Below are positions 2,835 to 64,000 of a DNA stretch of 64,000 nucleotides, in pieces. Under the pieces are notes generated by a model. It searched no databases, was not told where the DNA came from, and worked only from the letters and a program-made list of their open reading frames with translations. The translations under genes and the position numbers were made by a program. The DNA comes from Haliotis rubra. Taxonomy: Eukaryota. Every line of letters starts with the position of its first letter. Positions within the stretch are counted from its first letter, which is position 1. The stretch covers positions 682,001 to 746,000 of the forward strand of contig NW_025767078.1 of the NCBI RefSeq assembly GCF_003918875.1, written 5' to 3'.

Positions 2835-2964
2835 ATGCCAACCGTACAGACTCAGAACTTGAGGAATCTCAACTTGACAGGTCATGTTGGGTTCGACAGC
2901 CTGCCAGATCAGCTGGTCAACAAGTCGGTGTCTCAAGGCTTCTGTTTCAACATTCTCTGTGTTG
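2835..2964 (+). CDS. Septin exon (MPTVQ...FCFNILCV)
   Basis: gtttgcag| acceptor, G|gtaaga donor; conserved [16 protein letters not shown]. Confidence 0.95.
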
Positions 2965-25913: not shown

Positions 25914-25984
25914 TCAGTCAAAGTTGTCGTCTTTGTCTACAGGAAGGACTAATAACAACCTCTGTATCAACCTCGTAAAAGAAT
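25914..25984 (-). CDS. SLC7 last coding exon ([22 protein letters not shown])
   Basis: ttttcag| acceptor; T..Q.L..V motif typical of LAT C-termini; TGA at 25916-25914. Confidence 0.9.
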
Positions 25985-28565
25985 CTGAAAAAGATTTTAA
26001 AAATTAAACACAACACTGACCATAAATAACCTTACAAAAAAATCCACAATATTTGGTGGAGTCATATCTAATGACTTAAGCTTTCGCTCGTCACGTAGAC
26101 TAATGCTTAGTCCCTGAATATATACATATATATATATATATATATAATATTGATAGTAACAAATACACCCATTTAAACTGAAAAGGTACTTCAGTGAGTT
26201 GGAAGGTTGAGAGGAACCTGAGGAAATCTAGACTTGCATCATTTAGGGCTTTAGCATTGCAGGGAGAGCTAGGCAGTAGGGGAAATAATGTGGTTCAGGG
26301 ACTGTGAGTGAGTTTAGTTTTACGCCACACTCAGCAATATTCCAGCTATATGGCGGCGGTCTGGAAATATTCGAGTCTGGACCAAACAATCCAGTAATCA
26401 ACAGCTTGATCATCGATCTGCGCATTTGGAATACGATGACATGTGTCAACCAAGCCAGCAAGCCCGACCACCCGATCCCGTTAGTCGCCTCTTACGAGAA
26501 GGATAGGCTGCTAAAGACCAGTTCTGGACCGGATCTTCACGGGCTTAGCATCATACCTTGAGCTTCAAAAACTCAGGTTTGGTGATATTGCTGGAATATT
26601 GCTAAAATCGGCGTTAACCCAACTCACTCACTCACTCACAGCAGTGAGTTTATTGTGGAGTTATTTTACCCTTGAATTCCCTCAGCGACCAACTGTAACA
26701 CAGTGACAGAGTCATGACCCACAAATAGTACGAACTATTAAAAACATCTGCAACGCTCTAATGAATTTAAACACAATTAATACGACTTTTAATATAAATT
26801 GATGAAATAATTTCAAAACATTTGTGACATTTAAATGACGTTTTCAATTCTCAATTGAATCGAAGATGGCGGACAAACAGAAGGTGAGGTGAAATTGGGG
26901 TTAACGTCGTGCTTGAGAATATTTCGCTCATATGACGACGAGCATGCGTGAGCATGTGTATGTGCGGCTGCTTGTACTAGCCCAGACTGAAGCTGGTTTT
27001 ATAGTGCTAGCCCACTGAGATACCATGCCGCAGTGAAGCATGAATACCCCACTCAGACACATTATACTGACTCCGAGCCGACCAGTCCTTGATGTACCCA
27101 TTAATGCCGAGCGCCAGGCAGGGACCAACAAGTACCATATTTTAACGTCTTTTGGTACGACGCGGTCGGGGATCGAACCCGCGACCTTCCGCTCTTCGGG
27201 CGGACGCTCTAACCACTACACCACGGAGGCGGTCCGGACCACAGGGGCATGTCACGCATAGAAACAGAGTTAGAAAGACATATAGGTATATAGACCCTAC
27301 CCTAGTACTATATTATATAGTACTAGGGTAGGCTCTATATATAGTACTAGGGTAGGCTCTATATACCTATATGTCTTTCTAACGCTGTTTCTAAGCGTGA
27401 CACGCCCCTGTGGTCCGGACAAACAGAAGCATCGCGATTCAACTATGGATATAGTGAACTATTCATATAAGGAATTGCTTTCGTGGTCTTTTGGATTTCG
27501 TTATTTCAGAGGTCTACAGTACCAGTTCCAGTAAAACCTTACCTAATTTGTGCTTGACTGACGTGGGTTTGGACCAGACAGTTCCGACTACATACACCGG
27601 AACTCCTAACAGCATCAACAGAAGAGCGACTCCGCTTTCATGGGGCTTCTGGTATATCGTTAATATGAAAATGAGCAGACTGACTATGAAGAGAAAACTA
27701 GGTACGACCACCGGTAGCTGAAACAGGAGAAAACACCAGTCAGTGGGAGAGTACTCTTTAATTCCATGTACCACAGAACGGAAATATATCCCGTTATTTG
27801 ATATTTAAATTTTAAGAAAGTTGGCAGTTATTCGCAATTTGAGTTGTGATGTCTCTCTTGTTAATTTCTGGAGCTAATTTGTTTTCGCTCATATCTCAAA
27901 TTTTTGTGTGACTGTTTAATAGTGAGTGAGTATGTTTTTACGCCGCTTTAAGCAATATTCCAGCAACATCACGGCGGGGGGACACCAGAAATAGGCTTTA
28001 CACATTGTGCCCATGTGGGGAATCGAACCCGGGCCTTCGGTGTGACGAGCGAACGCTTTAACCATTAGGCTCCGCCCCTGATTGTTTAGTAACCGAGGCA
28101 ATATTGTTGTTACCCATGTTGAGGAAAGGCTATGTACTTATTGCCAAGCAAATGGAGAATTTGCTTTAAAAGCATGAATTATGAATTTTAATTTATAACA
28201 TGAATTATGAATGTCCACCCCAACACCCCCTCTCAAAAAAATGAATATATTATGGCATGGGTATATATATATATATGTACCTATTTACAGGGATACAAAA
28301 CACACACACACACAGACCCGTGAAGGTCCGGGTTAGAATATTGATCCTCAGTAACCCATGCTTGTCGTAAGAGGCGACTAACGGGATCGGGTGGTCAGGC
28401 TGCTGACTTGGTTGACACATGTCATCGGTTCCCCATTGCGCAGATCGATGTTCATGCTGTTGATTACTGGATTGTCTGGCCCAGACTCGAATTTTTCCAG
28501 ACCGCCGCCATATAGCTGGAATATTGCTGGGTGCGGCGTAAAACTAAACTCACTCACTCACTTAA

Positions 28566-28606
<41 letters not shown>

Positions 28607-31600
28607 CCCTGTACATATGTATGTGTGCCTTTATAGTGAAATTCAACTCTTTGGCTCTTTCTGTCTATAACATTGTCCCGCCATATAGCTGGAATATTGC
28701 TGAGTGCGGCGTAAAACTAAACTCACTCACTCACTATAACATTGTCGTCTACATCGGAAGGATCTGGATCTTAAATAAACGAGGCACATACACCAAATGA
28801 CAATGATGACGTTAATACCTTTATAGGGCGGGGCAAGTCTGGCTCCTTCCATCTGAGGTAAACCTGACCAGCCAGAACTGCACACAACACCGTCGCAAAG
28901 CTAAATCCCATCATCTCGATGAGGTAGAATATTTCCTCAAAACACTGCATAATGAGAGTCAGGATGAGCTGGAAGGGAAACCAAATAATGAAAGAACGAG
29001 ATAAAAGAAACATCCTCTCATGGGGAGAAACTTTAGACAGGTGCTGGAAAAAAATAATTCACCGTCCATCATGCAAACAAAATCAATTCGTCATTGAAAA
29101 ATAATATGTTACTTAAAAGTGGTAAATGATATGAAAAAGGTTCGCAACACATTTGGGCGGTGGGTAAAGCGTTAACTCGTCACGCCGTCACATGGGTTCA
29201 ATGTGTGAAACCCATTTCTAGTGTCCCCCGCCGTGATATTGCTGGAGTATTGGTGAAAGAAGTATAAAAGCTAACTCAGTCACTTACAATACACTTATTT
29301 ACTTCTGTTCATGTATTCGCTTTGATTAAACCCCGTTCATGCGATCATAAATGTGGAGTTGACTTTTACGATTACTGAGTGTGGTTCCAAGCGTTTTGGG
29401 ACGGTTATTTCATAACAGTGTCCTTGACCATAACGCCAGTTACGCCAAGAAAGGTCGACAGACATTGCTTGATACTATGTATTGTACGTAATGTCCATAC
29501 AGTCGTTACGATTAAGACCGTAAATTGGACTTAACGTTACGACGTAACAAAAACGTGAAGATCCGATACAGAATCAGTCCTCACTTATCGAAAGAGGAGA
29601 CTATTCGGATCGGGTGGTCAGACTCGCTGGTTTGGCTCATCTATGTCGTCTCTAAATTGCATATATAGATCGATGTTCTAGGTAAATCACTGGATTGTCA
29701 GGCTTGGTTATTTACAAACCAACTGCACATTGCTGAAACACTGGTACAGTTCTCTACACTGTTATTTCACAGAACCCTTACATTGCCTCCAAGGACTCTT
29801 TAAATTGATAATTGGGGTCCCCGGGACATGCAATGGTGACATATTGTAGTACAGCAGAAGACTCCAAACATTTTCACACATGTTAAATTTTTATACTCCT
29901 ATGAGTGGCGTGACAACATTATATCCAATTAGATATAGCAACCGTTGGGATATATTATTTCGGATTATTGATAAGGAACTGGAGAAATAGTTTTGGCACG
30001 GGATCTGTACAATGTCGATCCACAAACTACAAACTGGACAAACTACTGGGATAATTCTTACCATTCCTAATCATTTGCAGTGAAGGCACCAAACATCAGT
30101 TTCTAAAGAGGCAACAGAAGCCTTTCACAAGTGTAGGCCACGTTGGAGACATGTCCGTCCCATACACATCATTTCCCATACATCTGCGGCTGAGGTCTTG
30201 ACCCGAAATTTAAACTTGGATTTGGGCGAAACATGTCAAAGCTTTTGACTTGTCCATTTTGACGTTGTGTGGGATGCTAGTATATGACTGTAGTTTGCCG
30301 TCCCGTCATGGAGTGTTATGACAAACCAGGCAGACATGAAACAAACGCTTCAACAAACTTCATCCACATTTCGGACGCAACACAAGCTTAGCGCTTGTAG
30401 CCATCAGCAGGGAGAATAGATTATCCCTGCCATCAGGCAGCGGCCAAAATCAATGGCACAATTGTGTATCCAGTCATAGGTGCGCATGCGTCAGGGGTTA
30501 TTATCACACAGTTCACCGTCACAACTTAAAAATATATTACCGTTTAAATGATGAAAACAAGTCTATCTGAAAGCAACGAAATGTTATACTCACAATAACT
30601 ATTAAGGATGGCGCCGGTGTTAGATGGTTCACTGTGATCATTGATATTAAACTTGGCAAGTGATTGTTTTTAGCACCAGCGAAAAACAACCTAAAACAGA
30701 AACAAAAGTGTGTCTCTTTAAGGCTGGACAGTCCTGGAGCCAAGATGTAAAGCTCGGCACAAGTATGGTAGTTAAGGCCAGATGTCGTGAGAGGGAGTGA
30801 GTTGAAGTGAGTGGGTTCGAGTTTGTCTGAGAGCAGGGTTCAATTTGTCGGAGAGAGGGGATGATGTTGAGTTTTGTTTGTTTGTTTAACGATTCACTCA
30901 GCAATATTCAAGCTAGTAGGCGGCGGTCTGTAATTAATCTGGACCAGACAAACCAGTGATCAACAGCATGAGCATCGATCCACGCAGCTGGGATACGACG
31001 ACATGTGTTAACCAAGTCACATGATCCCGTTAGTCGCCTCTTATGACAAGCATGGGTTGCTGAAGATCAATTCTAACCTGGATCCTCACGGGTGATTGAT
31101 TGGTGGAAAGCTGGGCTGCTTAGTGGGCAGTCGGGTTGTTTATTGGTGAGTGTCGGGGTTCAGACTGTGGCTTAGGATGGTTGAGTTTGACGGAGAGTGG
31201 GGTTGAGTGTGACGTAGAATGGGGTTGAAATTCTGAGTTGAGATTGCTAATGAGATGAGGTGAGCGTGACGGAAAGTGGGGTTGAAGTTGACAAGTTGTC
31301 GATGTCGTTGGGAGTGAGGTAGACTAAGGCTTAGTCTCTGAATATATATAAATTTGATAGTAACAAACAAGCCCATTTATATTGAAAAGGAGCCCTAGGG
31401 AGACCAGAGATTCAGAACCTGCGGAAATCTAGACTTGCTTTATTTAGGGCTTTAGCACTGCAAAGAGGGCTTCTCAGTATGGAAATTAATGTGGTTCAGG
31501 GACTGTGAGACAGACTAGGGAGTGAGGTTGCTTGGTTGTGGTGGGAAGCGGGGTTTTAGATTGTCGCAGTGGGGATGCGTTTGGCGGAGACTTGGTTTAA

Positions 31601-34600
31601 ATTTAGCTGAGATCAAACTTCTGTTTGGCAGAGAGTAGGCTGAGACTGCATGAGAGGGGCTTTGCGTTTGGTTGAGAGAGGGTTTGCGTTTGGCTGAGAG
31701 AGGTTTTGCGTTTGGTTGAGAGAGGGTTTGCATTTGGTTGAGAGAGGGTTTGCGTTTGGTTGAAAGAGGGTTTGCGTTCGACGGATGGTTGGATCGAGGT
31801 TGTCCTTCCGTTACCTGGACATGGAGAGACAAGATCCGTTCATGGCTCCGATCACAGACACGGCTATCAGCACAGGCATAATCCACTGCAGGACAGGCAC
31901 GGTGACGGCGGAGAACGTCTGAAAACATTCACCAAAACACAACCATGAATGCATAACGCGGTCACATACATACACGACAGGCATATAAAGTTTATCCCTG
32001 GTAAATACTGTCAGTAAACAAACTAAACGATATACCCAGTTCGGGTTAGACCGCGGTCTATTTATTATATCTATTCCATGTGCAGAGTTGTGTCCCTTTG
32101 GGACGCCAGAAACCTATGATCCTGAATTGTCCCGATTACGTTATTAGGTTTGTCAGTACTATTGTGAGTTTCTTGCAGCTGATGAAGTCTCAGAACTGCA
32201 TCAGTTCGGATTTTCCGCACACATCACACTGAAACGCCGTGATATGACTGGAAAACTGGTCACGGAGTCACGCACACACTCACATGCACCCAAATAGGGT
32301 AAGTTGGTGAACGTTGTACCGTACACATGAAGAGTAAAATTCAACATTTGATTGCACGTTGAACATCTACTTCATTTTCCACTTTTGTTCACAATAGTAC
32401 CTAAAAACAAAAAGAAGAAAATGAAGAAAGAGAAATCGGGTTCGACCCCAATATTCTATTGTTCCCTCCCTCAGCCACTGGTAGGGGCATTTGGGTAGCC
32501 AAGTGGTTAAAGCGTTCGCTCGTCACGCCAAAGACCCTGGTTCGATTAACCACATTGGTACAATGTGTGAAGCCATTTTCGGGTGTCCCCCGCCGTGATA
32601 TTGCTTGAACAATGCTTAAAGCGGCGTAAAACTAAACGAAACGTACTCACTCATTCATCCACTGGTTTGCCTGTCCCCATACCCGATTATGTACAAGCAG
32701 CCGTGATATAGCTGGACAACAGCGTGAAAGAACATACTTACGACAGCGACAGCAGTAGAGTCGAGTATCTCCGCCGGTGACAATACAGCGAAGTATGCAA
32801 TGTTGGCGGTGATGTAGACGCTGGTGACAATCGCCATGGAGATGACAATAGCTCGCGGAACATTGCTGCAAATAATTAACAAATTTATGTCTGATTTCTC
32901 ATTTGTGAAAATAGTGGTAGTGGCTTGGTGCAAGGACTTCGAAAACCTTTAGCAATTCATTAGAATTATTCTTTCCAGCTACACCTGGTAACGTCAAAAC
33001 TGTGTGGCTTCAAGTATGACTGACTGACTGAGTTTGGTTTTACGCCACTTTTAGCAATATTCCAGCAACATCATGGCGGGGACACCAGAAATGGGCTTCA
33101 CACATTGTACCCATGTGGGGATTCGAACCCCGGTTTTCGGCGTGACGAGCCAACGCTTTAACCACTAGGCTACCCCACCGCCCCTTCAAGTATGACGTTA
33201 TTTCAAAGATTGGTTAGCATATACAATGTATTAAAGCCGTTGCTTTCATCTGTCTGTTGTTAATCTGCCATGCGGCGATCAGTCTAAGTAAACTTAGCCT
33301 TAATATTATTCGTTACACTGCTATACTGAGTCTAACAAACCCTAGTAGAAGGTCGTGTCAGCTAACCTTTGAGCGACCTATGACCGTCCAAGCAAACGAG
33401 AACGGATTTAACCCATCAGACAACGACTACTTGTTAGGGCTCGGCGGGACTTACAAAACGTTTTTTGGGATTTACTCTTCCCTGGTCGCTGGCACTGATC
33501 TCTCAATAAACGAAAATTCGCATAAAACACAGGTATATTTGGCCTGTAGTGTTGACTGCATGGTTACTATAAGCTTCTGTTTCCGCAAGATGACATCCTT
33601 GAATATTGACCAAAACGCTATTTTCAGCGACTGTTTACTCATTGCGTCCTCCATGTGTATCACTCGGAAGCGATCGTGCTGAAAATAGCATTCGGAATCG
33701 TTCGAGTTTTTAGGTAAAGGTTAAAATGGTATGTGCGAATGTTAACTTTCGCGATTTTGGTCAGCTGTGTTCTGATTGGTCAGTCCAAGAGGTTATCTCG
33801 CGACCTTCTACTAGGGCGTGTTAGACTCAGTATAGCCGTGTAACGAATAATACTGAGCCTAAGTTTACTCAGACTGTTGCGCGACAGAACCAATGACAGA
33901 TTATCTATGTCTATATATAGGAACATATAGCTTCTTTTATGTGACCACGTAACCTGCTAATCATATCACAAAAATCGATTAGATTTACAACAGACGTCTT
34001 TGTCACTGCCAATTATCTCTAAAATAGTTTTGAGGTAAACCCTATCCCCGGGATTTATGCATGGGTTTATGTGATGCTGGAAGTCGTCACTTCTTTCCAA
34101 AACCTTCATCTCACAATAATAATGGAGGTAATTTTAGGAGACGGGAGTGTCCTATTCCAGATTAAAAGATGCTAAAATAGAATAACTACAGACATATGAA
34201 GAATCCAATATTCTTAAAGATATTATAAGAAGAATGTGATTACAATGTATTAATGTCAGATCGAACTTTATTACCTTGAACTATTGTTATAGTCGATGCG
34301 TATAATATTAGCACTCGAATCCAATGTACTTTCATCAGTTTAAGGAAACGAAGGTTTATCATACATCCAGAAATCACGTGGCACACCTACCGATGAGGAT
34401 CTATCACTTCGTCGCACAGGAAGTTCAAGTAGTTCCTGAAATATAAATCAAATGTAGGTTGTAGGAATATCAATGAGTGAGTGAGTTCGGGTTTAAGCTG
34501 CCTTTAGCAATATTACCGCAATATCACGACGGGGGACACCAGAAATGCGCTTCACGCCTTGTACCCATGCGGGAAATCGAACCCGTAAATTCGGCGCCAC

Positions 34601-37600
34601 AAGCGAACGCTTTAACCATTAGGCTACCCTACCGCCCATAATTATATCAAACCAGGTTATAGTGCTGAATAGTGCAACTGCACCGTGACGGTATCAAAAG
34701 GCAGGTACACTCGACTGGGGTATGTCAATTCTTCAAATGAAATATAAAAGTATGAATATAATTCATGATTACATTTATGCTAACTTGGTATTATGTAAAT
34801 ATAAGTACGTATGTTGCATTACGCATACGGGTATCTATTATATTGTATCTGTAAGTATCTAGTATTATGTCCATAAGTATCTAGTATTATATCTATACGT
34901 ATCTAGTATTATATCAATTAGAATGTAGTATTTTGTAAATATATTTCTAGTATTATGTGAATACTTATCGAGCATTATGCAAATACTTATATAGTTCTTT
35001 GAGTGTTACTTATACGGTGTTATGTAACTATGTATCTAGTATTATGTAAATACTCATCTAGTATTATGTAAATACTTGTCTAGTGTTATATACTCATCTA
35101 GTATTATGTAAATACTTTTCTAGTGTTATATAAATACTCATCTAGTATTATGTAAATACTTGTCTAGTGTTATATAAATACTCATCTAGTATTATGTAAA
35201 TACTTTTCTAGTGTTATATAAATACTCATCTAGTATTATGTAAATACGTACCAGCCCCCGAAGGCCCAGAATCCGGAGTAGAAGCCGACAGCAATGGCCC
35301 CGGCGCTATAATCGCTGTCCTCAAACGAGTTCTCAAACTGTTCGGTCTCACCTAAAAACAAGCAGCATTGGAAAACAGATAAGTTGTCGCTTGCCAGGGA
35401 GTGAGTGAGTGAGTGAGTATGGTTTTACGCCGCTCTTTAGCAATTTCCCAGCAACATCACGGCGGGGGACACCAGAAATGGGCTTCACACATTGTACCCA
35501 TGTGGGGAATCGAACCCGGGTCTTCGGCGTGACGAGCGAACGCTTTAACCACTAGGCTACCCCACCGCCCCCGCTTGCCAAGGACGATAGGACATAACAT
35601 TTCTAAAATGTTAATTTCCCCTACAGCATTGAAAGTATAGTGAGTGAGTGAGTGAGTGAGTGAACTGGGATTCGACCTCAGGAGTGTACCAGTTCTGTTT
35701 AATGTGGGAGGAAATCCCGAAGTGATGGAAGTCTCAAGTTACAGATACCATATGCCATTTTAATGGTCAACAAAATGTTTGTGCTTCCGGGTATCCATAA
35801 ACGTTGTTAAACGTCACGACACTTTTCAGGGCACATTGGAACCATGTTGGGAATCGAACTGGGGACATCGATATGATGAACTAAATCTACATCATCAACC
35901 ATCAGTTCAAAGCGATCCACTTTTCTCTGCGTTTGAAAGTAAACGGGTTCATTGAAGATTCAGTATATATATTCTCCATCTATACTCACCCTTGCCAAGC
36001 CAAATGAATCCGATGATAATGATGATGAGGAGAGCGATGAGTTTGCTGCCGGTGATGACAGCCTGTACTTTGGTGGCCCATTTCACGTTCATGCAATTCA
36101 ACGCGATCAACAGGACTGAAAAGACAATGTATAAGTAAGTACGATTTATATGCCGCCTTTAGCAATATTCCAGCATTATCTCCGCAGGATACCAGTATTG
36201 GACTTCACAGATTGTACCCATAAGGAGAATCGAACCCGGGTCTTCGGCGTGACGAACGGATGCTTTAACCATCAGGCTACCCCACCGCCCCACGTTTGAG
36301 ATGAACAAAAAGGTAGTACGTGTGGTCAAACGCCGCTTTATACAGTAATGTAGTCACATAATGATGAGTCTACTCTAGCGTTAGAACAGGTGAGGTGAGG
36401 TGGAATTGGGTTAAACGTCGTGCTTGAGAATATTTCGCTCACATGACGACGTGCATGCGTGTGTATGTGTATGTGCGGCTGCCTGTACTAGCCCAGACTT
36501 AAGCTGGTTTTATAGTGCTAGCCCAGACTTAAGCTGGTTTTATAGTGCTAGCCCACTGAGATACCATGCCGCAGTGAAGCATAAATACCCCACTCAGACA
36601 CATTATACTGACTCCGAGCCGACCAGTCCTTGTTGTACCCATTAATGCCGAGCGCCAGGCAGGGACCAACAAGTACCATATTTTAACGTGTTTTGGTATG
36701 ACGCGGTCGGGGATCGAACTCGCGACCTTCCGCTCTCCGGGCGGACGCTCTAACCACTACACCACGGAGGCGGTCCGTTAGAACCGTATAGAAGGTAGGT
36801 GTTTATCACTGTAATGACACTGATGAGAACGTGACCTCGAGAACGACCCTTCTGTTAATCCTTCTGTTACCCAAATGCACCGCTGTAAACATATACATTT
36901 AGAATATTGTCAGACATAGCTACATGTATATCTATTGTTCTGTGTTCACTCCTCACAGCGTTACCTCTCGTGGTGCTCGCTGTGTGCTGTCAAAGCTCCA
37001 AACTGTGCTCAACGGCCTGCAACCGTGTATGGAGTTAAACTCGTAATTGACGGACATCTATGCTTGCAAACAGGCAGCACATTTCCATCTCAACTGTTTT
37101 GACTGTTTGTCAAATTGATTTTCTATTTCATTTCACGATGATAACGAAGGTGCTAATCAATCTGATGGAACTATTCCGTGAACGGGACGTAGCCTTTACT
37201 GTAACGTCTGCCACACTGATATGGTGGTCTGTATATACCGTATTTCTTCTAATAAGCGCCCCCGACGCTCAACAGACCCAGCAACTTATTAGAGGCCCGG
37301 CGCTTATTAGAGATCCGGCGCTTATTAAAATACCCTGTATTTTTAAAAGCGGGGGTGAATATTTTTAGACCAAGGGAGAATACATTTGCGAAAAACTGCA
37401 AAGGTCTATACCCGGCGCTTATTAGAGACCCGGCGCTTATTTCTGAAAGCACTGCTTTACCCCCGGCGGTTATTAGAGGCTCGGCGCTTAATAGAGGAAA
37501 TACGGTACTTGACTTCTGATATAAGCAACCGGATTGTACTGAGCGGTATATATTTATATTATGTAACCGAGATTTTATATAACCGACAGGATACATGTGA

Positions 37601-40600: not shown

Positions 40601-43600
40601 GCCATTTTGAATCGTACAGATGTAACTGGCACGGCACTGTATAGTCCAACAATATCACGGCGGGGCACTCCAGAATTGGGCTTCACATATTGTTGTACCC
40701 ATGTGGGGAATTGAACCCGGGTTTTCGGTGTGATGAGTGAACTCTTTAACCACTAGGCTATCCTACCTCCCCAACATGTGATCAAAGGAAACAAAGCAAA
40801 TATAACATTCTATACAGGGAGTGAGTGAGTGAGTGAGTGAGTGAGTTGGGTTTAGCGCCGCTTTCGTTCATATGGTCGATATTTTAGTGCCAACACAATG
40901 TGGAAGGAAAGACCGAAATGGTGCTGTGTTCGATGCTTACTTTGGTGACATCCATGACCAGGTGCTGATCAAGTCGGGAACATTATCAGGGCAAAGTCGG
41001 GTATAATCCCGTCACTCTACCAAGCCAAATGTCAACGCAAGCATTCTGACCTCAAATACCCAAAGAATTCTACCCATAAGTATATTTTGGTGTTTCACTG
41101 TGTGTTATGGTCCACAGGAATATTGTGTAGACATTCATGTTTAAGCTGCAGTCGCATGTCTGTTAGACAATAATCCAATTGTACAACTTGATTGTTTTCT
41201 ATCGTTGTTTTCTGATCCATTTAGGCATTTCAGGGGATCAAGCATCAAATAGGCGTGTCATACAGGTTACACACCACCAAATCGGAATACGTAATTTAAC
41301 AAACACTTTTCGTAGGGAGCCTTCAGTGCAGACTGAATCATCTGACAGCTGTGATTGGATGATTTGGTGTAAGATGTTTGTGTTCTTTAAATATACATTC
41401 ATCCAGTAATTAAAACTGACTATGTTTCAAATAATGCTGTCATTTATACATGATGAGTGAGTGAGTGAGTTTGATTTTACGCCGCTTTTAGCAATATTCC
41501 AGCAATATCACGGCGGGGGACACCAGAAATGGGCTTCACACATTTTGTCCATGTGGGGAATCGAACACGGGTCTTCAGCGTGACGAGCGAACGCTTTAAC
41601 CACTAGGCTACCCCACCACCCCCTTTTACATGATGACTTATACTGAATGTGACCACAGTTATTTTCAAGGGGTTGCCGTTTCGTGAGGAACTGGGGTTGG
41701 CTATTCAGCTGCTGGTACTCGGAAAATTGGTTAGCTGAGGTGGTCATATTTTTTAATTGCTTCTGTAAGGCCAGATTATGCAGTCATGTACAGGTAATAG
41801 CTCTTGATAGCTTAGGTAAGTTTTTAAAAAATATAACGTTACTATAGAAGTCAGTGGGAAAATATTTGTTTTTCTGTAACCTGTCTTTTTTTGGTCTTTT
41901 TGTAAATGTTTTTTTTATATTCAGCCTTGGTAATAACAGTTTTACATAAACCATACAAGTCCACGTGGACAGGGGTTACTGGTTTATAGCCTTAAACTTT
42001 TACCAATTATATTTTCTATTGTAAATCTATCATGAGTGCTTCAACATACACAAACTTTACCTATATATAATTCCAGAGCATATTACAAATCTATAATGAA
42101 AAGCTTCATAGAAACTTTGATATTGGTATAGTGAGACTTTTATATAGAGTATTTTAAATCCAAATTTAAAAACTCAAATATTTACCAATTATGATTTTAT
42201 TGTAAATCTAACATGTAACCTATCTTGATACCTACTGTTGACTGTCGCTGCAACGAGCCATGTCGAAGAAAACGGAGGGTCACAGTGTGGAAATACCGGG
42301 CGGAGAAGGTAAGTAGCGACGGTGAGACCAGCGACGGCTTGGGACATGGGAACACTGATGATTAGGTACACCCAGAGACACAAAAATGCCGGAAGATCCC
42401 CTAGTGAACGTTTAAGGTACATATATTCCCCTCCACTTTCAGGCATAGAAGCGCCAAGTTCTGCATAGCACAGGGCACATAGTGTCGAGTAAACTCCGCA
42501 CAGCGCCCAAGTGACACAAGACATCCCGACGGAGCCCACATTGGAGAGAATCCCCACTGGGGAAATAAAGATCCCCGCTCCGATAATTCCACCAACAATT
42601 ATGGAAACACCATGGAAAAGGTTGATCTGCCTTTTCAGCTGGACTTTCTTGTGTTGTTTCACGTCTTGGCGGGCATGTCCCCCATACCTGTTTGGTCTGG
42701 CGGCCATATTGGATAATATGAGGTACAATGAGATTACCATATCAACCCGAGGACCGAAGGCCACGAGGGCTGATATGGTAGTCTCGGGCTGATATGACGG
42801 GCGAAAGGAAACTGTCATATCATAACCTTTTTGTCAAATATCATGTCAAGGGACGTATCTCTAAAATAAAATAGGCTCCGTCCCTAACTTTTCGGGTGTT
42901 TGCGTTTATTCATTCCGTATCAGTTTAGTAGCCGGAAATACGGTTGAATTGGCTTATATGCATTTTCGGCCCGGGTGGTCAATATGGACATATGCCGACA
43001 GTCAGTATTGTATGTGCAAATTGGTCCATATTATTCATAGGTATATGATAATACCTTTCATCACTTAATACAGTGGTATTTTCCCTGATATGGACTTTTT
43101 TTGCCACCCCGATATGGGCAGGATCAGCATGGTCATATCTGAGATGCAATTAACATGAAGCTTTATGTTATGCCTTACGGCATCGGTCATATATGGGTGT
43201 CTCGGGATGATATCGGGCAAGATATGAAAAAAATAATAATCTCTACGTGTCAGTCTAGTTGAAATTGCATGTATCATCCTCCGGATACGGACATTGATGT
43301 ACCAAGAGACATAAGATTTGCCGTACATTGTAAAGAATTCCAGCCAGTCACACAAAACTTCCCACTCTGAAAACACGCCATCAAATAAGGAAACAGAAGT
43401 TGATCTGCTTTTCCATCTGCACATTCTGATGTTAAGTGATGTGGCTATTCTGAGCAAACTCCTACAGCTTTAACAATATCGATAGGAAACATCATACGGA
43501 ACGGAGCATCCTTCCAAAATATACTCATGCCAATAATCCTTGTCACCCTTCAAAATATTGGAGAGGGGTGGGGTAGGGGATGACAAGCTATTTATTGTAC

Positions 43601-46600
43601 AGAAGCCTTCGAAAACATTTTCACATCAGTGCTCAAGTATGACTGAGGAAGTGTCAGCTTATCGGATAAGATGCAAGTTAGTGCATCCCCGATAACTGAG
43701 AAAGATAAACATTGCATAACCAGAGCAAATGTGTCGAAGACCGTAACATAACATAATGAAAATAGACTGTGAACACACGCGTTATCGCAATCTCGTGATA
43801 TTTTGTCTGCTGTCTATAGATACGAACATTGTGTGGGTATGTCTGGTCTATACAGTAGAGGCAAGAATTTAGTAGAGACAAAGCAGAACTATTGTCCTGG
43901 GTATCAGTTTGTCTGACTGGAATAAACATTAAGATGGTAGGATTTAGTCCGAGAAATCAAATAATAAATGTTAGGAAGATATATTACATCATAGCTACAG
44001 ACGCTGTCTCTACACACGAGAATCATACTTCGATACACTCACCGATTTGTAGGTGAGGCGAATGAAGGACAGACACCGGAATGCATTATGGGAATGTAGA
44101 CACGGGCATTCTACCCTGCTAATAGAGGTCTCTGCCAAACTGCTGCCAAGCTTTTTTCGAACAGTTTAACGGTTACTGGGAAATGGATCGCAAGGTTCCA
44201 CCAAGGACTGCGTGACATGGAGGCAAGTGACATAATCTCTGCATGACCATTTTGTCCCACTAACGTTGTTTTTAAGAAGATTTTTGCACGGTACTACACC
44301 CGATAATGGTTACTTTTGTATTGGATGGACCTCGCCGGTACAATTGCGTTGTGTGTTGAAGCCTTGCCGTTCATGCTTACACTATGCCAGTGTGTGACAT
44401 CAGTATTTGTGTTGACAGTTCTGTTCTTCCGTTCCACTTCCATATCTCCAGGAACTTCTACAATATCTCCCGTATTAACCTTCGAGGGAACCATGGTGCT
44501 TCACCATTAGTCAGAATCGTTATGAATCTTGGAGTACAGGTGATTCTGAATGCTTCTTGTAGAACCCTAGCAATGCTCATCTATGTGCCACCCTGCTGGT
44601 GATGCATGGTCTGCCAATATTCTGAAGTGTTGTACTTAACCTTAAGCGAATCTGGTCCATGTGTCATATTGTTGCTGATGCCTGGTCTATGGACATTCTG
44701 GAGGCTTCAAGTAGAAAACTTGCGTAGCTCATCCATGTGTCATCTTGTTAGTGATGTGTGATCTGTGAACATTCTAAAGGCTTCAAGAAGGGCACTTGCG
44801 AATCTCGTGCATGTGTCATCTTGTCGGTAATGTATGATCTGTGAACATTCTGAAGGCTTCAAGTAGAACACTTGAGAATATCGTCAATGTTCCATCTTGT
44901 TGCTGATGCCTAGTCTTTGAACATTCTGGAGGCTTCAAGTAGAACAGTAGTGAATATCGTCCATGTGCCATCTTGCTGGTGATGCCGGGTCTATGAACTT
45001 TCTGGAGGCTTCAAGAACGACACTTGCGAATCTCATCCATGTGTCATCTTGTTAGTGATGTGTGATCTGTGAACATTCTAAAGGCTTCAAGAAGGGCACT
45101 TGCGAATCTCGTGCATGTGTCATCTTGTCGGTAATGTGTGATCTGTGAACATTCTGAAGGCTTCAAGTAGAACACTTGAGAATATCGTCAATGTTCCATC
45201 TTGTTGCTGATGCCTAGTCTTTGAACATTCTGGAGGCTTCAAGTAGAACAGTAGTGAATATCGTCCATGTGTCATCTTGTTGCTGATGCCTGGTCTATGG
45301 ACATTCTGGAGGCTTCAAGTAGAAAACTAGCGAATCTCATCCACGTGTCATCTTGTTAGTGATGTGTGATCTGTGAACATTCTAAAGGCTTCAAGAAGGG
45401 CACTTGCGAATCTCGTGCATGTGTCATCTTGTCGGTAATGTGTGATCTGTGAACATTCTGAAGGCTTCAAGTAGAACACTTGAGAATATCGTCCATGTGC
45501 CATCTTGCTGGTGATGCCGGGTCTATGAACTTTCTGGAGGCTTCAAGAACGGCACTTGTCAACCTCATCCATGTGTCATCTTGTTGCTGATGCCTGGTCT
45601 ATGGACATTCTGGAGGCTTCAAGTAGAAAACTTGTGAATCTCATCCAAGTGTCATCTTGTTGGTGATGTGTGATCTGTGAACTTTCTGGAGACTTCACGA
45701 AGGACACTTGCAAAACCCGTCCATGTGTCATCTTGTTGGTGATGCGTGGTCTGTGAAACATTCTGGAGGGTTGTATTTGGACTTATATTTGGTCTTATAC
45801 AAATGTCATCTTGTCGGTGATCTGTGAACATTCTGCAGGCTTCAAGTAGGTCACTTGCGAATCTCGTCTGTGTGTCACCCTACTGGTGAAGCCTGGAATA
45901 TGAACATTTTGGAGGCTTCAAGTTAAACACTTGCAAAACTAGTACACGTGTCATTCTACTGAGTGAGTGAGGGTATGTTGCAATAAGCACTCAGCAATAT
46001 CCAAAGAATTTCACAGGTGAGGTAGTACGTCAGTGGGTTATGAGCGGGTACCTGAAACGTCGTGGTACGATTGCTACGAAAGCGTCAGCGGGATTAGTGA
46101 TCTGTTCGAGCAGCAGTTTACATTGTCACGAAATTGCTAGAAAAAATCGCTGTGTAAGCACAAACAATTCAATTTCGTCATGACGATTTTCGCACTGAAT
46201 CAAACTGAATTAATCGTTATGTACACAGTATGTGGGTGTGAGTTAAAATCGGCATTTTGTAAGGTATAACGCGACGACATAAAGTTTGTACGTATACACA
46301 AGTGTTTGGTACACAGACTTCTCCCATCTGACCTTGACCTACAATAAACCCAGCGCTAAACAAAATTTCTTTGTGTAGATACGTGTTTCGTTATAATGAA
46401 TCTACGAAGGAACGCAGAGTTAACACGTGCTAGTTTGGTTGAGTAACTGATATATCTCAGTGAAGTCTCTTCATTCTTGTATGAATTAAAATAGAACGAC
46501 CCAGTGGTTTGTTTCACCTGTGACTGCCGTTATCTTATCTAAGCAAATAACACAGGGTCTACATTCATGTAACCTACGGTGTATGAGTTTCACGTAACTT

Positions 46601-49262
46601 GGTTCAAAATAGAACCAAACACCGATAAGTAATCTATGCACGATGTATGTATGGTAACGTATAAACAAGCAAATATTGAGTCTTCTGTGGGTGTAGTTTG
46701 TTCGTTTGTTGATTAAAGCCACGGTCTGCAATTTTCAAGCCATATGGTGGAGGTTCGTAAATTGTCGAGTCTGAAAATCCAAGGATTGGTATAAACAACC
46801 GGGATACCATGACACGCATCGGGTCAGGGAGCCTGACCGCCTGACCGCCTGACCGCCTGATCCTCCAAGTCGGCAGGGGGTCACCATATATTCACACTGT
46901 TGTCTGATTCCTCATTGTTCTCTGTGGCCTTGGTTTGTTCTGTTGACGCAGGACAGAAGAGTGCCCGGGGTTCTCCACTCCGAGCACAGTCCATCTGACA
47001 CCCTGAGATGTTTCCACATTTCCAAGTTCCAGGTGGGTCAACTAAGCAACGCTTCCTGGTAGAAGTCAAAAGAATTTACTGTCTGGGCGTGGTGTAGGGG
47101 GGCCCTGAGCTGATGATGAACCTTACCAGTTCGACTGTGCCGCTCTCACCCACTACCTGCATAAAATCTATTTCAGTCGGTATTGCAACAACAACAACAA
47201 CAACAACAATAGTGTCACTACTTATAGCCACCATACACCCGTCGCCTATCTACAACCAGAGACCATATACTAGTACTAGTATATCTATTATATGGTCTCT
47301 GCTACAACGCTTAGAGAATGTATTGCTATTACATCATATGTTCCCTGGATATTCTCGAACTCTCAATAACAAGCCTGATGATAGTGGGTCCTATATCCCC
47401 AATATAGGACCCTCTGGGTGATGTTTATCATATATCCTCCCACATATCCCATGCATCATGCATACTGAACAATTGTCTGCATGAAATGGCGTTATAAGGA
47501 GGACGAGTCCAAACCAGTACACATATTCCCCAAGGGTGGACTTGCCTGTGCTCATCCTTTCGCGAATGCCTTGTATCACTTAAGATTCATAGCCACGTGC
47601 GATAAACTCCGAATCACTTTCTTATGATAATGGAAAGAGTTCTGTGCTTTAATACCGCGCCACGCCCTGACTAATATCAGCCTGGTTCCCGGGGTCTGTT
47701 GCGCCTGCGCTAACGCGCCGACTGTCAGTGTTGGAGCGTTAGCGCAGGCGCAACAGACCCCGGGAACCAGGCTGGGACTAATATTTGAATATTCTTTTGA
47801 GTGCGAAACCCTGATTCGTTTTCAACATCTAACCAATCTAATTGAAATGCGTGACACGTTGTTACTACAACATATTCCATGTGATAGCATAACAATCCCA
47901 TTTGTCACTGTTGACCCACAATGCACCATTGCCCTACAGTCAAATACGAACGGTCATCGACGTGGAAAATATCTGCTCTTATAATATTATACAAGATGTC
48001 TTTTGGGGCAAATCTGTACTGACGCGTCATTTGCCAATCACATGGGGATTATTTTATTATATTCCGCAGGTATTTACTAGCCCTGCTCCAAGGCTGTACT
48101 GAAGGCTAATACCATGCATGGATAGTAATTCCATCCTTTAAAGAGGCAAGTCTAGATAAGGGGACAGGGTCCCAGTCTGTTCTTTATTTTATTTTTAGAA
48201 ATTATCATTTACACTATTAATTCTATCTTTGGAGACTTGTGCAAGTCTAGTATTTACTAAATGTCCGAGATATGGCGCCGCATGCCTGGCACTCCTCATG
48301 CATATTTTCATTTAATATTTTTCTGCTGGTGCTACGTTCTTGTCATATGTTCTAAACATATTACTCATGAAAGCAACAGCCCATGCATACCGATAGAGTA
48401 TGATGCTTGAGCCGCACATTTGAAAACTTGATTTGAACCCAAAAATTCCAACGTTATCAAAAAGGTATTAAGCTGAAAACAGTCGCAGGTTCATTCCCAT
48501 ATGGAATACACCATCACCGCAAAACCAGTTTGGTTTGTTTAACTTATCCACCATCAAAACTGGTATACGTTCTTTTGCATGGCGGGTTTACCTGAATCGT
48601 TCTCAGAACAAATAACAGTTTATATTTCGTTTTATGTCTTTACATGATTACATATGTTATAGAAACAGTTTACTGGAAAATATTCGGCAGCTGGCCTTAT
48701 TGTGTGACGATCAGTTACAGATGTATTAAACAGATGTGAATGGTTCTCTTGTTTTGGAATCGTTAAGGATCATGGATTGATACTTACTGATGATTATCGC
48801 TGCGAGGAGCCTGATAGATGAAGAGGGAGGGTCGCAGTCGGGGAAGACGGGACGAAGAATGTAGGTGGCAAATATCAGACTAGCAGCGGCCACCCCCACT
48901 GGGCACAGAATGATAAGATTCACCCACAGACACAGAAACGCCGGACAATCTCCAAAAGCACGTTTAATGTACACATATTCCCCTCCCGATTCTGGAATCG
49001 AAGCACCAAGTTCTGCAAAACACAAGGCACAGAGTGTCGAGTAAACTCCACACAGCGCCCACATTACACAAGACATTCCGACAGAGCGCACATTGTAGAG
49101 GATCCCAACTGGGGACACGAAAATCCCTGCTCCGATGATAATCCCGACGATTATAGAGACACAGTGAAAGAGGTTGATCTGTTTTTTTAACTGCACTTTT
49201 TGCTGAGGTTGGGAGTCGAGGCCTTGAGCGAGGGTCCTCTTGCCTTTAGCCCCAGCTGCCAT
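25914..49262 (-). CDS. SLC7 heteromeric amino-acid transporter light chain (LAT/y+LAT/xCT/b0,+AT family); join([49262-48788 or 42707-42236],36115-35990,35351-35252,34435-34391,32865-32742,31918-31815,30690-30594,28968-28819,27717-27543,25984-25914), 488 or 487 aa
   Basis: GT-AG introns, consistent phases, open frame. TM1 IIGAGIF, AELG..PESGGEY, FP.CDPP (Cys for the SLC3 disulfide), TM6 [31 protein letters not shown]. Confidence 0.95.
26884..27234 (-). mobile_element. tRNA-derived SINE family C (~350 bp; body resembles the Meta/MESC domain, from memory)
   Basis: A/B boxes, body cgtaccaaaagac...ccctgcctggcgctcggcatt, (cacct)n tail, TSD cggacaaacagaag. Confidence 0.85.
27240..27412. mobile_element. 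Fold-back MITE with 8-bp TSD GTCCGGAC (P-element or hAT superfamily)
   Basis: Near-perfect palindrome cacagggg...cccctgtg; TSD at 27232-27239 and 27413-27420. Confidence 0.85.
27543..27717 (-). CDS. SLC7 exon 9 (LPVVVP...GVPVY...KHKL)
   Basis: tttcag| acceptor, G|gtaagg donor. Confidence 0.94.
28317..28562 (+). mobile_element. Family B element
   Basis: Near-consensus copy with (ctca)n tail. Confidence 0.85.
28819..28968 (-). CDS. SLC7 exon 8 (LILTLIM...[13 protein letters not shown])
   Basis: cttccag| acceptor, AAG|gtatta donor. Confidence 0.94.
30594..30690 (-). CDS. SLC7 exon 7 ([12 protein letters not shown]...TPAPSLIVI)
   Basis: ttttag| acceptor, |gtgagt donor. Confidence 0.94.
31320..31518. 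repeat. Dispersed repeat family E (~200 bp); other copies ~20399-21025 (interrupted) and 26096-26308
   Basis: Three homologous copies gcttagtctctgaatata...ggttcagggactgtgag. Confidence 0.8.
31660..31780. repeat. 22-bp tandem repeat (gagagagggtttgcgtttggtt)n
   Basis: About 5-6 units downstream of the SLC7 exon 6 donor. Confidence 0.85.
31815..31918 (-). CDS. SLC7 exon 6 ([15 protein letters not shown]...[10 protein letters not shown])
   Basis: ttttcag| acceptor, AG|gtaacg donor. Confidence 0.93.
32742..32865 (-). CDS. SLC7 exon 5 ([10 protein letters not shown]...STAVAV)
   Basis: ttgcag| acceptor, |gtaagt donor. Confidence 0.94.
33021..33184 (-). mobile_element. SINE family A
   Basis: TSD ttcaagtatgac on both sides. 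Confidence 0.9.
33280..33876. mobile_element. MITE with ~75-bp TIRs
   Basis: cagtctaagtaaacttag...ccctagtagaaggtcg mirrored at the right end. Confidence 0.8.
34391..34435 (-). CDS. SLC7 exon 4 ([15 protein letters not shown])
   Basis: atttcag| acceptor, CG|gtaggt donor, 45 nt. Confidence 0.92.
34850..35246. repeat. 22/44-bp AT-rich tandem repeat (tagtattatgtaaatactcatc)n
   Basis: Tandem periodicity abutting the SLC7 exon 3 donor. Confidence 0.9.
35252..35351 (-). CDS. SLC7 exon 3 ([12 protein letters not shown]...[11 protein letters not shown])
   Basis: tttttag| acceptor, TG|gtacgt donor. Confidence 0.93.
35400..35571 (-). mobile_element. SINE family A
   Basis: TSD cgcttgcca(g/a)gga; near-consensus copy. 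Confidence 0.9.
35990..36115 (-). CDS. SLC7 constant exon 2 ([17 protein letters not shown]...WLGK)
   Basis: ttttcag| acceptor, G|gtgagt donor, 126 nt, phase 1-1. Confidence 0.93.
36388..36775 (-). mobile_element. SINE family C with an internal 30-bp tandem duplication
   Basis: Homologous to 26884-27234; TSD cgttagaac. Confidence 0.85.
37236..37507. mobile_element. Tc1/mariner(pogo)-type MITE
   Basis: ta-ccgtatttc...gaaatacgg-ta, internal cccggcgcttattagag subrepeats. Confidence 0.8.
38603..38712. mobile_element. Short palindromic MITE; second copy at ~57991-58098
   Basis: ggtccgatccacaaaa...tttggggatcgggacc, two homologous copies. Confidence 0.7.
39260..39630 (+). mobile_element. Decayed LINE ORF2 fragment related to the element at 53.5-55.7 kb
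   Basis: [20 protein letters not shown] and [10 protein letters not shown] parallel LFDQLVKPILLYGAEVWG and MVYGELGRYP. Confidence 0.7.
41455..41623 (-). mobile_element. SINE family A
   Basis: A/B boxes, (gagt)n tail on the + strand. Confidence 0.85.
42236..42707 (-). CDS. SLC7 first coding exon, proximal variant 1B
   Basis: ATG at 42707 aligns with the 1A start, 472 nt, A|gtaggt phase-1 donor at the homologous codon. Confidence 0.88.
43259..43458 (-). pseudogene. Decayed third copy of the SLC7 first exon (pseudo-exon)
   Basis: Minus-strand fragments FAQ...[18 protein letters not shown] (43321-43341) and [12 protein letters not shown] (43268-43306) are collinear with exons 1A/1B; stops, frameshifts and a ~60-nt deletion. 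Confidence 0.85.
44560..45960. repeat. 76-bp minisatellite, ~18 units, with higher-order structure
   Basis: Unit starts at 44734, 44810, 44886, 44962, 45038 (period 76). Confidence 0.95.
47678..47774. mobile_element. 97-bp hairpin MITE with 9-10-bp TSD
   Basis: Perfect arms cagcctggttcccggggtctgttgcgcctgcgctaacgc; flanks gactaatat; partial relative at ~40408-40440. Confidence 0.85.
48788..49262 (-). CDS. SLC7 first coding exon, distal variant 1A (N-terminus to start of TM4)
   Basis: ATG at 49262, 475 nt, A|gtaagt phase-1 donor. Confidence 0.93.
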
Positions 49263-52200
49263 CCTTGCTGTTCAGGGATCGTCGTTCGACTGTCACGAAC
49301 AGTAAAATTTTGGTCACGTTGAATATGCATGTCAGATACCAAGGTCTACATACTGCGGCCCTGACACAGTATACAAAGTAGTTAGTAGCGGTTTGTACTG
49401 TCAAAATGATTAGATTACACGGTGCTCACCCTTGAACCTGCAAGTAGGCTATTGTGTCTAAACACTGACATCACCTTACATAAGGTGCGAGGCTATCAGA
49501 TCATCACCCCGTGACCCACACCTACGTCCATAGCTGAAACAGCATCCGTATCTTTGTTACGTATATCTCCACTGACGTATCATATAACCCATTTTATGCG
49601 TAGAGGGCATTAAAAAGGGTTTCAATAATTTTTTATGACTTTGATGTCACACCCGTATTATTCACACCCGTTTTACATTCAAAGACCTCTTTAAGGCAGA
49701 TACTATAGCGATTGAGTTAAGTTTTACGCCGCACTCAGCAATATTCTAGCTATATGGCGGCGGTCTGCCCGATACTAGAGACAGGAATACAACAACTACA
49801 ACAACAAGAACAACAGTATTTTTGTAAAACTGAAACAATAATAATGGTCATGTTTTTGCTTCATGTTTTAGGGATGCCATAGTCAGAATCCCTGAACCAT
49901 GTTAATTTCCATTCCTCTCATCCCTTACTCTGGTGTTACAGCTCGAAACAGGGCAGGTTTAGATTTCTTTAGGTCTATATCATGTGAGACCTATGTTTGT
50001 TGTGAGAGATATAAGATGGATCAGGTGGTCAGGTTGGTGACTTGGTTGACATGATGTCATCGTGCCCCACTGACACCAATATTATGGATCGTTCCTCATA
50101 ATATCAATCGCAGGATTGTCTGGTTCAACCTCAGTTATTTACAGACTGCCGTGATTTAGCTGGAATACTGTTGAGTGCGACGTTACTCAACATTACCCCA
50201 CAAACGTTAACTCAGCGAGTCGCCTCTTACGACAAGCATTGGTTGCTGAAGACCAGTTCTAACTCTGATCTTCAGAGTTGGTGTCGGCAGTCTTGCTAGT
50301 ATCTCAGATCCAGCGGAACAGTGATGGAATACTAAAACAGATCTGATCGGTTTGATCACAAAGGTGCTGATTTAGGAAACATCAAATGTAAACTTATAAA
50401 TGCGGTTCGTCTCATTTTAAAGAAAAGCCGGAAATAGATTCAAGAATGTCGTCAAAACGTTATGGATTTTATGTTCAATTCCAGCAACCATCAACAGCCA
50501 ATACACATGACTATAACATTTTTTTTTAAATCAGTATTTCGAAGGTTCGTCACGCCGAGAAGGTCGATTCCCCATGGGCACAATGTGTTAAGCCCATTTC
50601 TGGTGTCCCCGCCGTGATATTGCTGGAATATTGCTAAAAGCGGCGTAAAACTAAACTCAATCAGTATTTCGAGAAGGTCCTTCACCAGTCACGGTACACT
50701 AGTTCACGATTCTGGAACACTGTACCTATCTTCTAAACCAAAAGATGAACGAGGAGACTGTGAAAAATGTTGAACCAATTATTGATTTAATTACAGGTCG
50801 CTTTCCAAGTGCTTGGGCTACAACAGTCATGAGCGCAGTTTCATGACGATGTGTTCTTATCAGATGGGTACTTCCCCGAAGATTCAGATATTCTTGGAGA
50901 AAAGTAACAGTGGGGTTGCGAAACGAACGTACACATTCCCATATCGACAATATATGTTACTGACGTATAGGAACACATTACACGCTTAAAAGGTACAGTT
51001 TATTGTTTTTGTAGATTTTAAGCAACCGTTTTATTTGGTAAGTAGAAGTAAATTGATATTTTAGCATGAAATTGAATAGACATACACTGAAAAACTCTAG
51101 AGTTTAGAGAACGTAACGTAAATTCAGATGTTTATATGTCTGCAATAATGGAAACACATAATCTGAGTATTATGCTTGCTTGCTTGGTCTACAGCAAGGA
51201 TGCACTCTCTGTCGTTTACATTTTCTGTATTTTAAACTATTTTGAGGAATTATATTTTCTAGGTTTAGATTTGTATTCTTATCAGAGGAAATGTACAATT
51301 AAATGTCTTTCATTAGGGTATCTTAGAGGACAGAGGCACTTTCTTTTAAGTTAGTGAATGAGTGAATTTGTAAATGAGTTTGATTTAATGCCGCTTTTTA
51401 CAGTAAACAGCTTATTGTTGGAGTGGTGGAGGTCTGAGACGATAGGGGGCGGTGGGGTAGCCTATTGGTTAAAGCGTACGCCCGTCACGTCGAAGACCCA
51501 GGTTCGATTTCCCACACGAGTACAATGTGTGAAGCTCATTTCTGGTGTCCCCTGCCGTGATATTGCTGGATTATTGCTAAAAGCGGGGTACAACTAAACT
51601 CACTCACTCACTACTTGTGACTTTAGCTAGCTACCAGTAAGGCAGTACTGGAGGTCCGCTAATTGTTGGGTACAAGGAGCTATTGTCCCCTGCTGTGATA
51701 TTGCTGGATTATTGCTAAAAGCGGCGTACAACTAAACTGACTCACTCACTCTGAGACGTTTGCCACGTAAGTGAAAACAACTGAGCTCGAGTATGATACT
51801 GACAAACTTATTCGCCTTGACGCCATGTTCGAGAAATAGTTTATCTGATACTATAGATAATGTTTATATTACTATACTGATACCTTCAGTCATATCCATC
51901 GTGTTACCGATAGCGTTATTAGTCAATAATGTGTCGCGCCATCAAGCTGAAGAATGTATCTTAACGGGTTTAAGGAAGCACTCCTATAATATTTTATAGC
52001 TACGTTCTCATTGATTGGACCTTGCTTTCAACTGTTGACACAATAATGAGCGAGTTCGTTTTCCGCGTTGACCTGATGTGAGAGCAGCCTGGTTCCTGGA
52101 TACGGAGTATTACCATCTCCGTCCTTATTACTATAATAATACTTAATTTAATACTTTTGTATTATTCTGCAGTTGAATTTATACTAGATGGTTGGTTTGT

Positions 52201-63848: not shown

Positions 63849-64000
63849 AATTAGAGAGGTTGAGCAGCGCTGCGTGTACATGTACGCCTACGTGTGATCG
63901 GGGGTATTCCCCTAAATACCTGTGTATTACGTCATCACTATTTGCTGACCTGTCATCCTACAAGTTCCCGCGGTCGCCTACTTCGAAGGATACACGTAAG

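Follow-up and report, generated by a model that had tools for sequence, protein, structure and literature searches.

Can one amino-acid transporter gene supply two transporters through the choice of its first coding exon? The question is raised by a locus of the abalone Haliotis rubra (assembly GCF_003918875.1, contig NW_025767078.1, positions 682,001 to 746,000), for which an earlier reading of the DNA, hereafter the original prediction, had proposed an SLC7 transporter with a cassette of variable first exons joined to one constant body. In this stretch of 64,000 nucleotides, termed the window, the minus strand carries a single SLC7 light-chain gene with two paralogous first exons (1A and 1B), each running from an ATG to a splice donor, one decayed copy of such an exon, and the constant exons 2-10 (36115-25914). 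Comparison with other abalones, limpets and a nemertean leads us to regard 1A and 1B as probably functional alternative first exons with separate starts. The gene consists of the following features, where TM stands for transmembrane helix and a slash marks an exon border.

49263..49705, minus strand: conserved 5' flank of exon 1A (promoter, 5' untranslated region or intron end), with a conserved pyrimidine-rich ...aacag directly before the ATG
48788..49262, minus strand: exon 1A (first coding), 475 nt; N-tail, TM1-TM3, the Cys of the extracellular loop and the start of TM4; phase-1 donor CA/gtaagt
43259..43452 (approximate), minus strand: decayed third copy of a first exon, with several in-frame stops and indels
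42236..42707, minus strand: exon 1B (first coding), 472 nt; paralogue of 1A with its own ATG; phase-1 donor CA/gtaggt at the same codon
35990..36115, minus strand: constant exon 2; acceptor ttttcag/TC, giving Ile at the split codon whichever first exon is joined
35252..35351, minus strand: constant exon 3 (homologue tblastn and splice sites)
34391..34435, minus strand: constant exon 4 (homologue tblastn and splice sites)
32742..32865, minus strand: constant exon 5 (homologue tblastn and splice sites)
31815..31918, minus strand: constant exon 6 (homologue tblastn and splice sites)
30594..30690, minus strand: constant exon 7 (homologue tblastn and splice sites)
28819..28968, minus strand: constant exon 8 (homologue tblastn and splice sites)
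27543..27717, minus strand: constant exon 9 (homologue tblastn and splice sites)
25914..25984, minus strand: constant exon 10 including the stop codon (splice sites; stop at 25914)

The body exons were located by tblastn with a full-length homologue from Physella acuta (P0003), taken from the representative search; splice sites were positioned by eye and then checked by a script. All ten coding exons have GT-AG borders, and 1A and 1B each join exon 2 in frame via a common split Ile codon. The coordinates and borders of the two intact first exons, each with an ATG start and a phase-1 GT donor at the same codon, agree exactly with the original prediction. Their open reading frames (ORFs) on the minus strand are uninterrupted over 158 codons in 1A and 157 codons in 1B, and both exons end one base into a codon (...ATCA/gtaagt in 1A, ...AACA/gtaggt in 1B). 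The encoded segments are 74% identical over 142 residues (BLASTP, E 8e-66). The count of 33 differences among 137 residues, 10 of them in the 22-residue TM3 segment that starts WVNL/WVYL, was reproduced without change, as were the TM1 motifs GIIIGAG (1A) and GGIIGAG (1B) and the Cys of FPxCDPP in both exons.

Within the window, the nucleotide likeness of 1A and 1B is restricted to the coding exon (76% over 424 nt), and they are therefore no recent segmental or allelic duplicate. A tblastn search with P0003 found no body exon in the interval separating 1A from 1B, nor any on the upstream side of 1A up to position 64000; this and the splice borders confirm that there is a single set of exons 2-10, starting at 36115, with none between the first exons. 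Joined to exons 2-10, 1A encodes a protein of 488 amino acids that is 100% identical to the H. rubra RefSeq product XP_046579434.1 (P0449), and its identity to the single RefSeq products of H. asinina, H. rufescens and H. cracherodii is 96.7%, 91.4% and 91.4%, respectively. Searches of a set of 5.8 billion proteins with 1A and 1B found no abalone fragment across the junction of exon 1 and exon 2 and no 1B-type exon outside Haliotis (best 67%).

Vertebrate light chains of the LAT/xCT type are disulfide-linked to an SLC3 heavy chain. The full 1A isoform matches the Pfam family AA_permease_2 at 3e-69, and each first exon alone matches it at 2e-18 (1B) to 2.5e-20. The likeness to the human LAT1, LAT2, xCT, y+LAT and b0,+AT chains extends over the full length (E 1e-103 to 8e-140), and both first exons align gap-free to the N-terminal third of the solved chains of these five transporters. 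The heavy-chain Cys is kept in FPDCDPP (1A) and FPHCDPP (1B); it aligns without gaps to LAT1 Cys164 and to xCT Cys158, the conserved Cys that forms a disulfide with the SLC3 heavy chain (PMC8654953). IIGAGIF, with the unwound G-x-G motif of TM1 that binds the substrate carboxylate (PMC8654953), is present in both exon types of all Haliotis species compared. The abalone protein thus shares the TM1 G-x-G, SGGEY and the extracellular Cys with the human light chains, although no vertebrate orthologue can be named for it. These features indicate that the gene encodes a LAT/xCT-type SLC7 light chain of H. rubra. No SLC3-type heavy-chain gene was found within the 64-kb window.

Conservation and turnover of the first exons in abalones

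We compared the window with the orthologous loci in independent assemblies of H. asinina, H. rufescens and H. cracherodii. In every one of the three, a 1A orthologue is followed downstream by a 1B orthologue and then by one exon 2. This bears on the possibility that the exon pair is an assembly artefact, i.e., haplotigs or a tandem gene duplication that was collapsed or joined wrongly. Nothing was found in favour of an artefact: the window is gap-free and without any N, the order of 1A, 1B and a single exon 2 is repeated in the three other assemblies, and the copies are 26% diverged in protein with a synonymous divergence (dS) above 1, far above allelic divergence. We consider it extremely improbable, and the misassembly that the original prediction had allowed for is not borne out.

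The divergence between 1A and 1B (dS of about 1.1-1.3, with a ratio of nonsynonymous to synonymous divergence, dN/dS, of 0.16-0.19) shows that the duplication is old. In H. rubra, H. asinina and H. rufescens, 1B has retained the common ATGGCCGCCAGA start, the open frame and the donor. The dN/dS of both exons, which had been proposed as a check, is well below 1: between species, the whole-exon values are 0.02-0.10 for 1A and 0.16-0.22 for 1B, with all bootstrap replicates below 1 and the 95% bootstrap intervals of 1B reaching no higher than 0.31. By region, dN/dS of 1B is 0.11-0.13 in the membrane core (three species, dS 0.3-0.8) and 0.9-1.7 in the N-tail, and the core of 1A has 0.01-0.03. The N-tail evolves neutrally, unlike the membrane core. 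The substitution patterns indicate purifying selection on both exon types, with a weaker constraint on 1B than on 1A.

Survival of the 1B frame by chance was addressed by simulations of neutral substitution at K of 0.3-0.5, in which the ORF and the ATG of 1B persisted together in only 0.2-1.5% of runs. In the comparison of H. rubra with H. asinina, 1B forms a sharp-edged block of 90.6% identity, the alignable intron having 69-80%. The maximum-likelihood tree unites all Haliotis first exons in one clade, and within it the four Haliotis 1B exons are monophyletic (100/99) and mirror the species grouping. The intact ORF, the low dN/dS, the island of identity and the 1B clade argue that 1B has been kept as a coding sequence since before the species split; that 1B is a translated exon is strongly supported by these comparisons.

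The number of first exons varies between the species. In H. rufescens, 1C (L008:24613-25089) brings the number of intact first exons to three; it precedes 1B by about 1 kb. The decayed copy of H. rubra (about 43452-43259) sits about 0.55-0.75 kb upstream of 1B; it matches 1A in tblastn with an E of 3e-4 and rufescens 1C, its best match, with 2e-5, and the blastn pieces are collinear. No trace of a third first-exon copy was found in the loci of H. asinina or H. cracherodii. The H. rufescens locus also contains a fragmentary second copy of the 3' end of 1A, covering its last 35 codons (L008:12897-13001) and lying 2.4 kb downstream of the intact 1A.

Several observations weigh against a functional 1B and would fit an unused relic of a partial duplication, or an exon inactivated recently, in which case only 1A and the body would be made, as in RefSeq. 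The homologue search returned from RefSeq a single 1A-type product, with no isoform label and no 1B-type protein, in the four Haliotis species, and the 1B isoform is therefore unannotated. For the limpet Patella vulgata, too, RefSeq lists the proximal-exon isoform only. Exon 1B evolves 5-10 times faster than 1A, and its conserved 5' flank measures only about 30 nt, compared with about 440 nt for 1A. Next to 1B on its 5' side, at 42740-42850, H. rubra has a hairpin-forming insertion resembling a miniature inverted-repeat transposable element, which cannot be aligned with H. asinina. The 1B exon of H. cracherodii (L010:21642-22115) has lost the conserved ATG and one codon, and its otherwise invariant SGGEY reads SGGGY; this exon may be decaying, perhaps in an early stage of exon death. 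The third copy is already lost in H. rubra. Taken together, the damage in H. cracherodii and the dead copy in H. rubra mean that members of the array can die. Yet a relic would be expected to resemble the decayed copy at 43452-43259, whereas 1B has an intact ATG, ORF and donor, lies as a sharp island of conservation within the intron, has a core dN/dS of 0.11-0.13 among three species at a dS of 0.3-0.8, and carries a TM3 motif that is invariant in all four species. We consider a relic quite unlikely, and the evidence favours two exons that are both in use.

Proposed use of the first exons and the substrate pocket

At its 5' end the gene has a small tandem array of first coding exons, in which a dead copy of the 1C kind lies between the live exons 1A and 1B. 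Both live exons encode the N-tail, TM1-TM3 and the heavy-chain Cys and have their own start codon and a phase-1 donor, the sole acceptor being that of exon 2. In the mechanism that we propose, several donors face one acceptor, and each mRNA would contain one first exon. A transcript starting at 1A would be spliced over 1B, leaving 1B inside intron 1, and a transcript starting at 1B, from a putative start site of its own, would join exon 2 directly. The products would be two 12-TM transporters of 488 and 487 amino acids, identical from TM4 on; the differences would lie mainly in TM3, on the side that lines the pocket, with one further position in TM1. The two transporters would be expected to differ in substrate selectivity or kinetics.

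The same two proteins could arise by another mechanism, if 1A and 1B were mutually exclusive internal exons behind one common non-coding exon and promoter, with the choice falling at splicing and not at the promoter. The flank of 1A is relevant here. It belongs to a block aligned between H. rubra and H. asinina (49705-48779, 84.8% identity over 934 nt), of which about 120 nt can be aligned across the four species, and a pyrimidine-rich ...(c/t)tc(t/a)acag, 1-5 nt before the 1A ATG in all four species, resembles a 3' splice site. Given this conserved acceptor-like ...aacag, 1A may be preceded by a non-coding exon. Moreover, mutually exclusive pairs of internal exons occur in a related SLC7 gene of Lineus and in SLC7A2 (PMC12714141). 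The sequence before 1B differs: the closest AG on its 5' side stands at -62 (H. rubra), -10 (H. asinina) or -13 (H. rufescens), none with a pyrimidine tract, and the lack of a conserved acceptor-like site favours a transcription start of its own for 1B. In addition, 1A and 1B each have their own ATG and unrelated N-tails, and in the limpet Patella the duplicated unit of the three distal first exons took in about 400 nt of 5' flank as well. We therefore view internal exons as unlikely and favour alternative first exons with separate starts. Translation from an in-frame ATG further upstream, at 42740, would lengthen 1B by 11 codons.

The differences between the two exon types are concentrated in TM3. 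Across the four Haliotis species, 15 of the 136 core columns show a fixed difference that separates every 1A from every 1B sequence; 9 of the 15 fall in the 16 residues 115-130 of TM3 (hypergeometric P 1.3e-6), and one lies in TM1, at the residue just before G-x-G (Ile41 in 1A, Gly in 1B). The TM3 motif is invariant within each exon type in these species. Residues were mapped using published structures and ungapped alignments to the solved chains anchored on the conserved Cys, by which the LAT1 number is that of 1A + 21 and the xCT number that of 1A + 15. The variable TM3 positions correspond to LAT1 I140, S144 and I147 and to xCT Arg135. In LAT1, I140, S144 and I147 together with V148 make up the TM3 face that touches ligands, and S144 is a determinant of LAT1/LAT2 selectivity (PMC11828871); in xCT, Arg135 is an essential residue that binds the distal carboxylate (PMC8654953). 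The residue at the position of xCT Arg135 is Cys in 1A, Val in 1B and Ser in 1C. Because neither 1A nor 1B has the Arg of xCT/LAT1 at TM3 position 135/141, the substrate class is not readable from the sequence. The type-specific changes in TM3 lie on its pocket-lining face and would fit two different substrate pockets.

Other features of the window include repeats and a neighbouring gene. In the intron between 1A and 1B there is a 76-bp minisatellite (44646-45954, about 17 copies, with a higher-order period of 304 bp), and H. asinina and H. rufescens have a similar array at the corresponding position. Repeats of about 160 bp are located at 35400-35580, 36146-36292, 37804-37949, 40641-40779 and 41459-41622, and also occur in other Haliotis loci. 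The copy at 35400-35580, the only one read over its whole length, combines tRNA-like A/B boxes with a (CACT)n tail, and these repeats in intron 1 and later introns look like copies of a tRNA-derived short interspersed nuclear element. Fragments of reverse-transcriptase-like ORFs on both strands at 53600-55630, about 4-6 kb upstream of 1A, look like retrotransposon debris. Downstream of the SLC7 gene, on the opposite strand, there is a septin gene (about 2700-14650, plus strand), and the SLC7-septin neighbourhood is also seen in H. asinina (L009) and Patella caerulea (L011). Inside the septin region, at 10350-11310, a tandem DNA repeat gives rise to long open frames in both directions, composed of a short peptide-like repeat.

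First-exon cassettes in other lophotrochozoans and comparison with known systems

The search for exon 1 in related molluscs, suggested with the original prediction, yielded the orthologues in three Haliotis species described above and a separate array in Patella caerulea (GCA_036850965.1), whose locus was merged from four overlapping stretches into 61.7 kb. Its four first exons are all intact, have an ATG and share the same phase-1 A/gtaagt donor, and a single body set (SNE40_016071) follows them. The genes SNE40_016074, 016073 and 016072, annotated as 'hypothetical proteins' of 145-152 amino acids, are upstream first exons of SNE40_016071 and not separate genes. As in Haliotis, a septin gene lies downstream on the opposite strand, and the SLC7 loci of P. 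caerulea and Haliotis are therefore syntenic. The Patella first-exon copies form their own clade, have pairwise dN/dS of 0.24-0.51 and vary at the same TM1 and TM3 positions; the three distal exons were duplicated along with their 5' flank of about 400 nt. The expansions in Haliotis and Patella look independent, with concerted evolution as an alternative.

In the nemertean Lineus longissimus, RefSeq lists XP_064637643-XP_064637646 ('LAT small subunit 1-like' X1-X3), which have consecutive accessions and a body that is identical from the residue matching the start of Haliotis exon 2. Before this boundary, X1-X3 have three differing but homologous N-terminal segments with TM1-TM3 and the Cys. 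This gene is an annotated instance of the proposed isoform pattern. It belongs to the same subfamily and has the same boundary of exons 1 and 2 as in Haliotis, but represents a separate expansion in another phylum and is known from database annotation only; we found no published description of it. The cassette of first exons on one constant body was thus seen in four independent Haliotis assemblies and in Patella, and equivalent isoforms are annotated in Lineus.

A second Lineus SLC7 gene (P0409, P0457, P0454 and P0455; L012) has four RefSeq isoforms of 487 amino acids that differ only in two adjacent segments and represent all four combinations. Its pattern indicates two pairs of mutually exclusive internal exons, whose positions match those of exons 7 and 8 in Haliotis. 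The Lineus 'isoform X1' P0409 was considered as a member of the X2/X3 gene and rejected, as it belongs to a different gene. Two first-exon hits on one contig of Elysia marginata were likewise rejected as a cassette; the copy examined has its own body exons and is a complete tandem gene. The gastropod-like loci L003 and L004 each have a single first exon within 10 kb, and the cassette is therefore not universal.

A broader reading, to which we give an even chance, is that lophotrochozoan LAT-type light chains have repeatedly evolved small first-exon cassettes that swap TM1-TM3, with independent expansions in abalone, limpet and nemertean. One gene would then give rise to several transporters with different pockets, all capable of heavy-chain binding, and these natural chimeras would pinpoint the TM3 positions (LAT1 140-151) that set selectivity.

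In the UGT1A and clustered protocadherin genes, variable first exons are spliced to constant exons, and each variable exon has a demonstrated promoter. The abalone gene resembles these systems in having tandem paralogues of a first coding exon, all equipped with an ATG and a donor of their own, and in its one shared downstream set. Its copies are also born and die, since intact, dead and partial ones vary between abalone species. It differs in that the variable exon of UGT1A and protocadherin genes is a whole domain, whereas that of the abalone covers three helices of the 12-helix APC fold, which must pack against the constant helices. Moreover, arrays of the abalone type are small (2-4 exons), with a promoter for each exon that is putative.

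Within SLC7, a known case is SLC7A2, in which mutually exclusive tandem exons 7 and 8 yield CAT-2A and CAT-2B and alter transport affinity and capacity (PMC12714141). In this member of the same transporter superfamily, too, homologous duplicated exons replace each other, but the swapped exon is internal and belongs to a cationic transporter (CAT) that needs no heavy chain. In the abalone, the swap concerns the first coding exon of a LAT-type protein, including TM1, TM3 and the heavy-chain Cys. Internal exons of the SLC7A2 type have both an acceptor and a donor; 1A and 1B have equal donor phases, but their own ATGs, unrelated N-tails and no conserved acceptor at 1B. The suggestion that a first-exon cassette had not been described for SLC7 holds as far as papers are concerned: our literature search, which did not cover all journals, found no published description of one in SLC7 light chains. 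It needs amending in that the tandem-exon swap of SLC7A2 is known and RefSeq already carries the alternative-first-exon isoforms of Lineus. The layout as such is known from UGT1A and protocadherins; what appears to be new is that the swapped part consists of the first three helices of one APC fold in a heavy-chain-linked light chain, and that pocket-lining residues of TM1 and TM3 and the disulfide Cys are swapped with them.

For annotation, the practical consequence is that the RefSeq models of four Haliotis genomes are without the 1B isoform, and that the annotation of P. caerulea splits three first exons into separate 'genes' of 145-152 amino acids. If both isoforms are made, the abalone would diversify this amino-acid exchanger without gene duplication, by replacing three helices of the pocket inside a single fold. 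As the type-specific residues fall on TM3 positions tied to ligand contact or selectivity in LAT1 and xCT, the isoforms would be ready-made chimeras for probing substrate choice in a medically important family.

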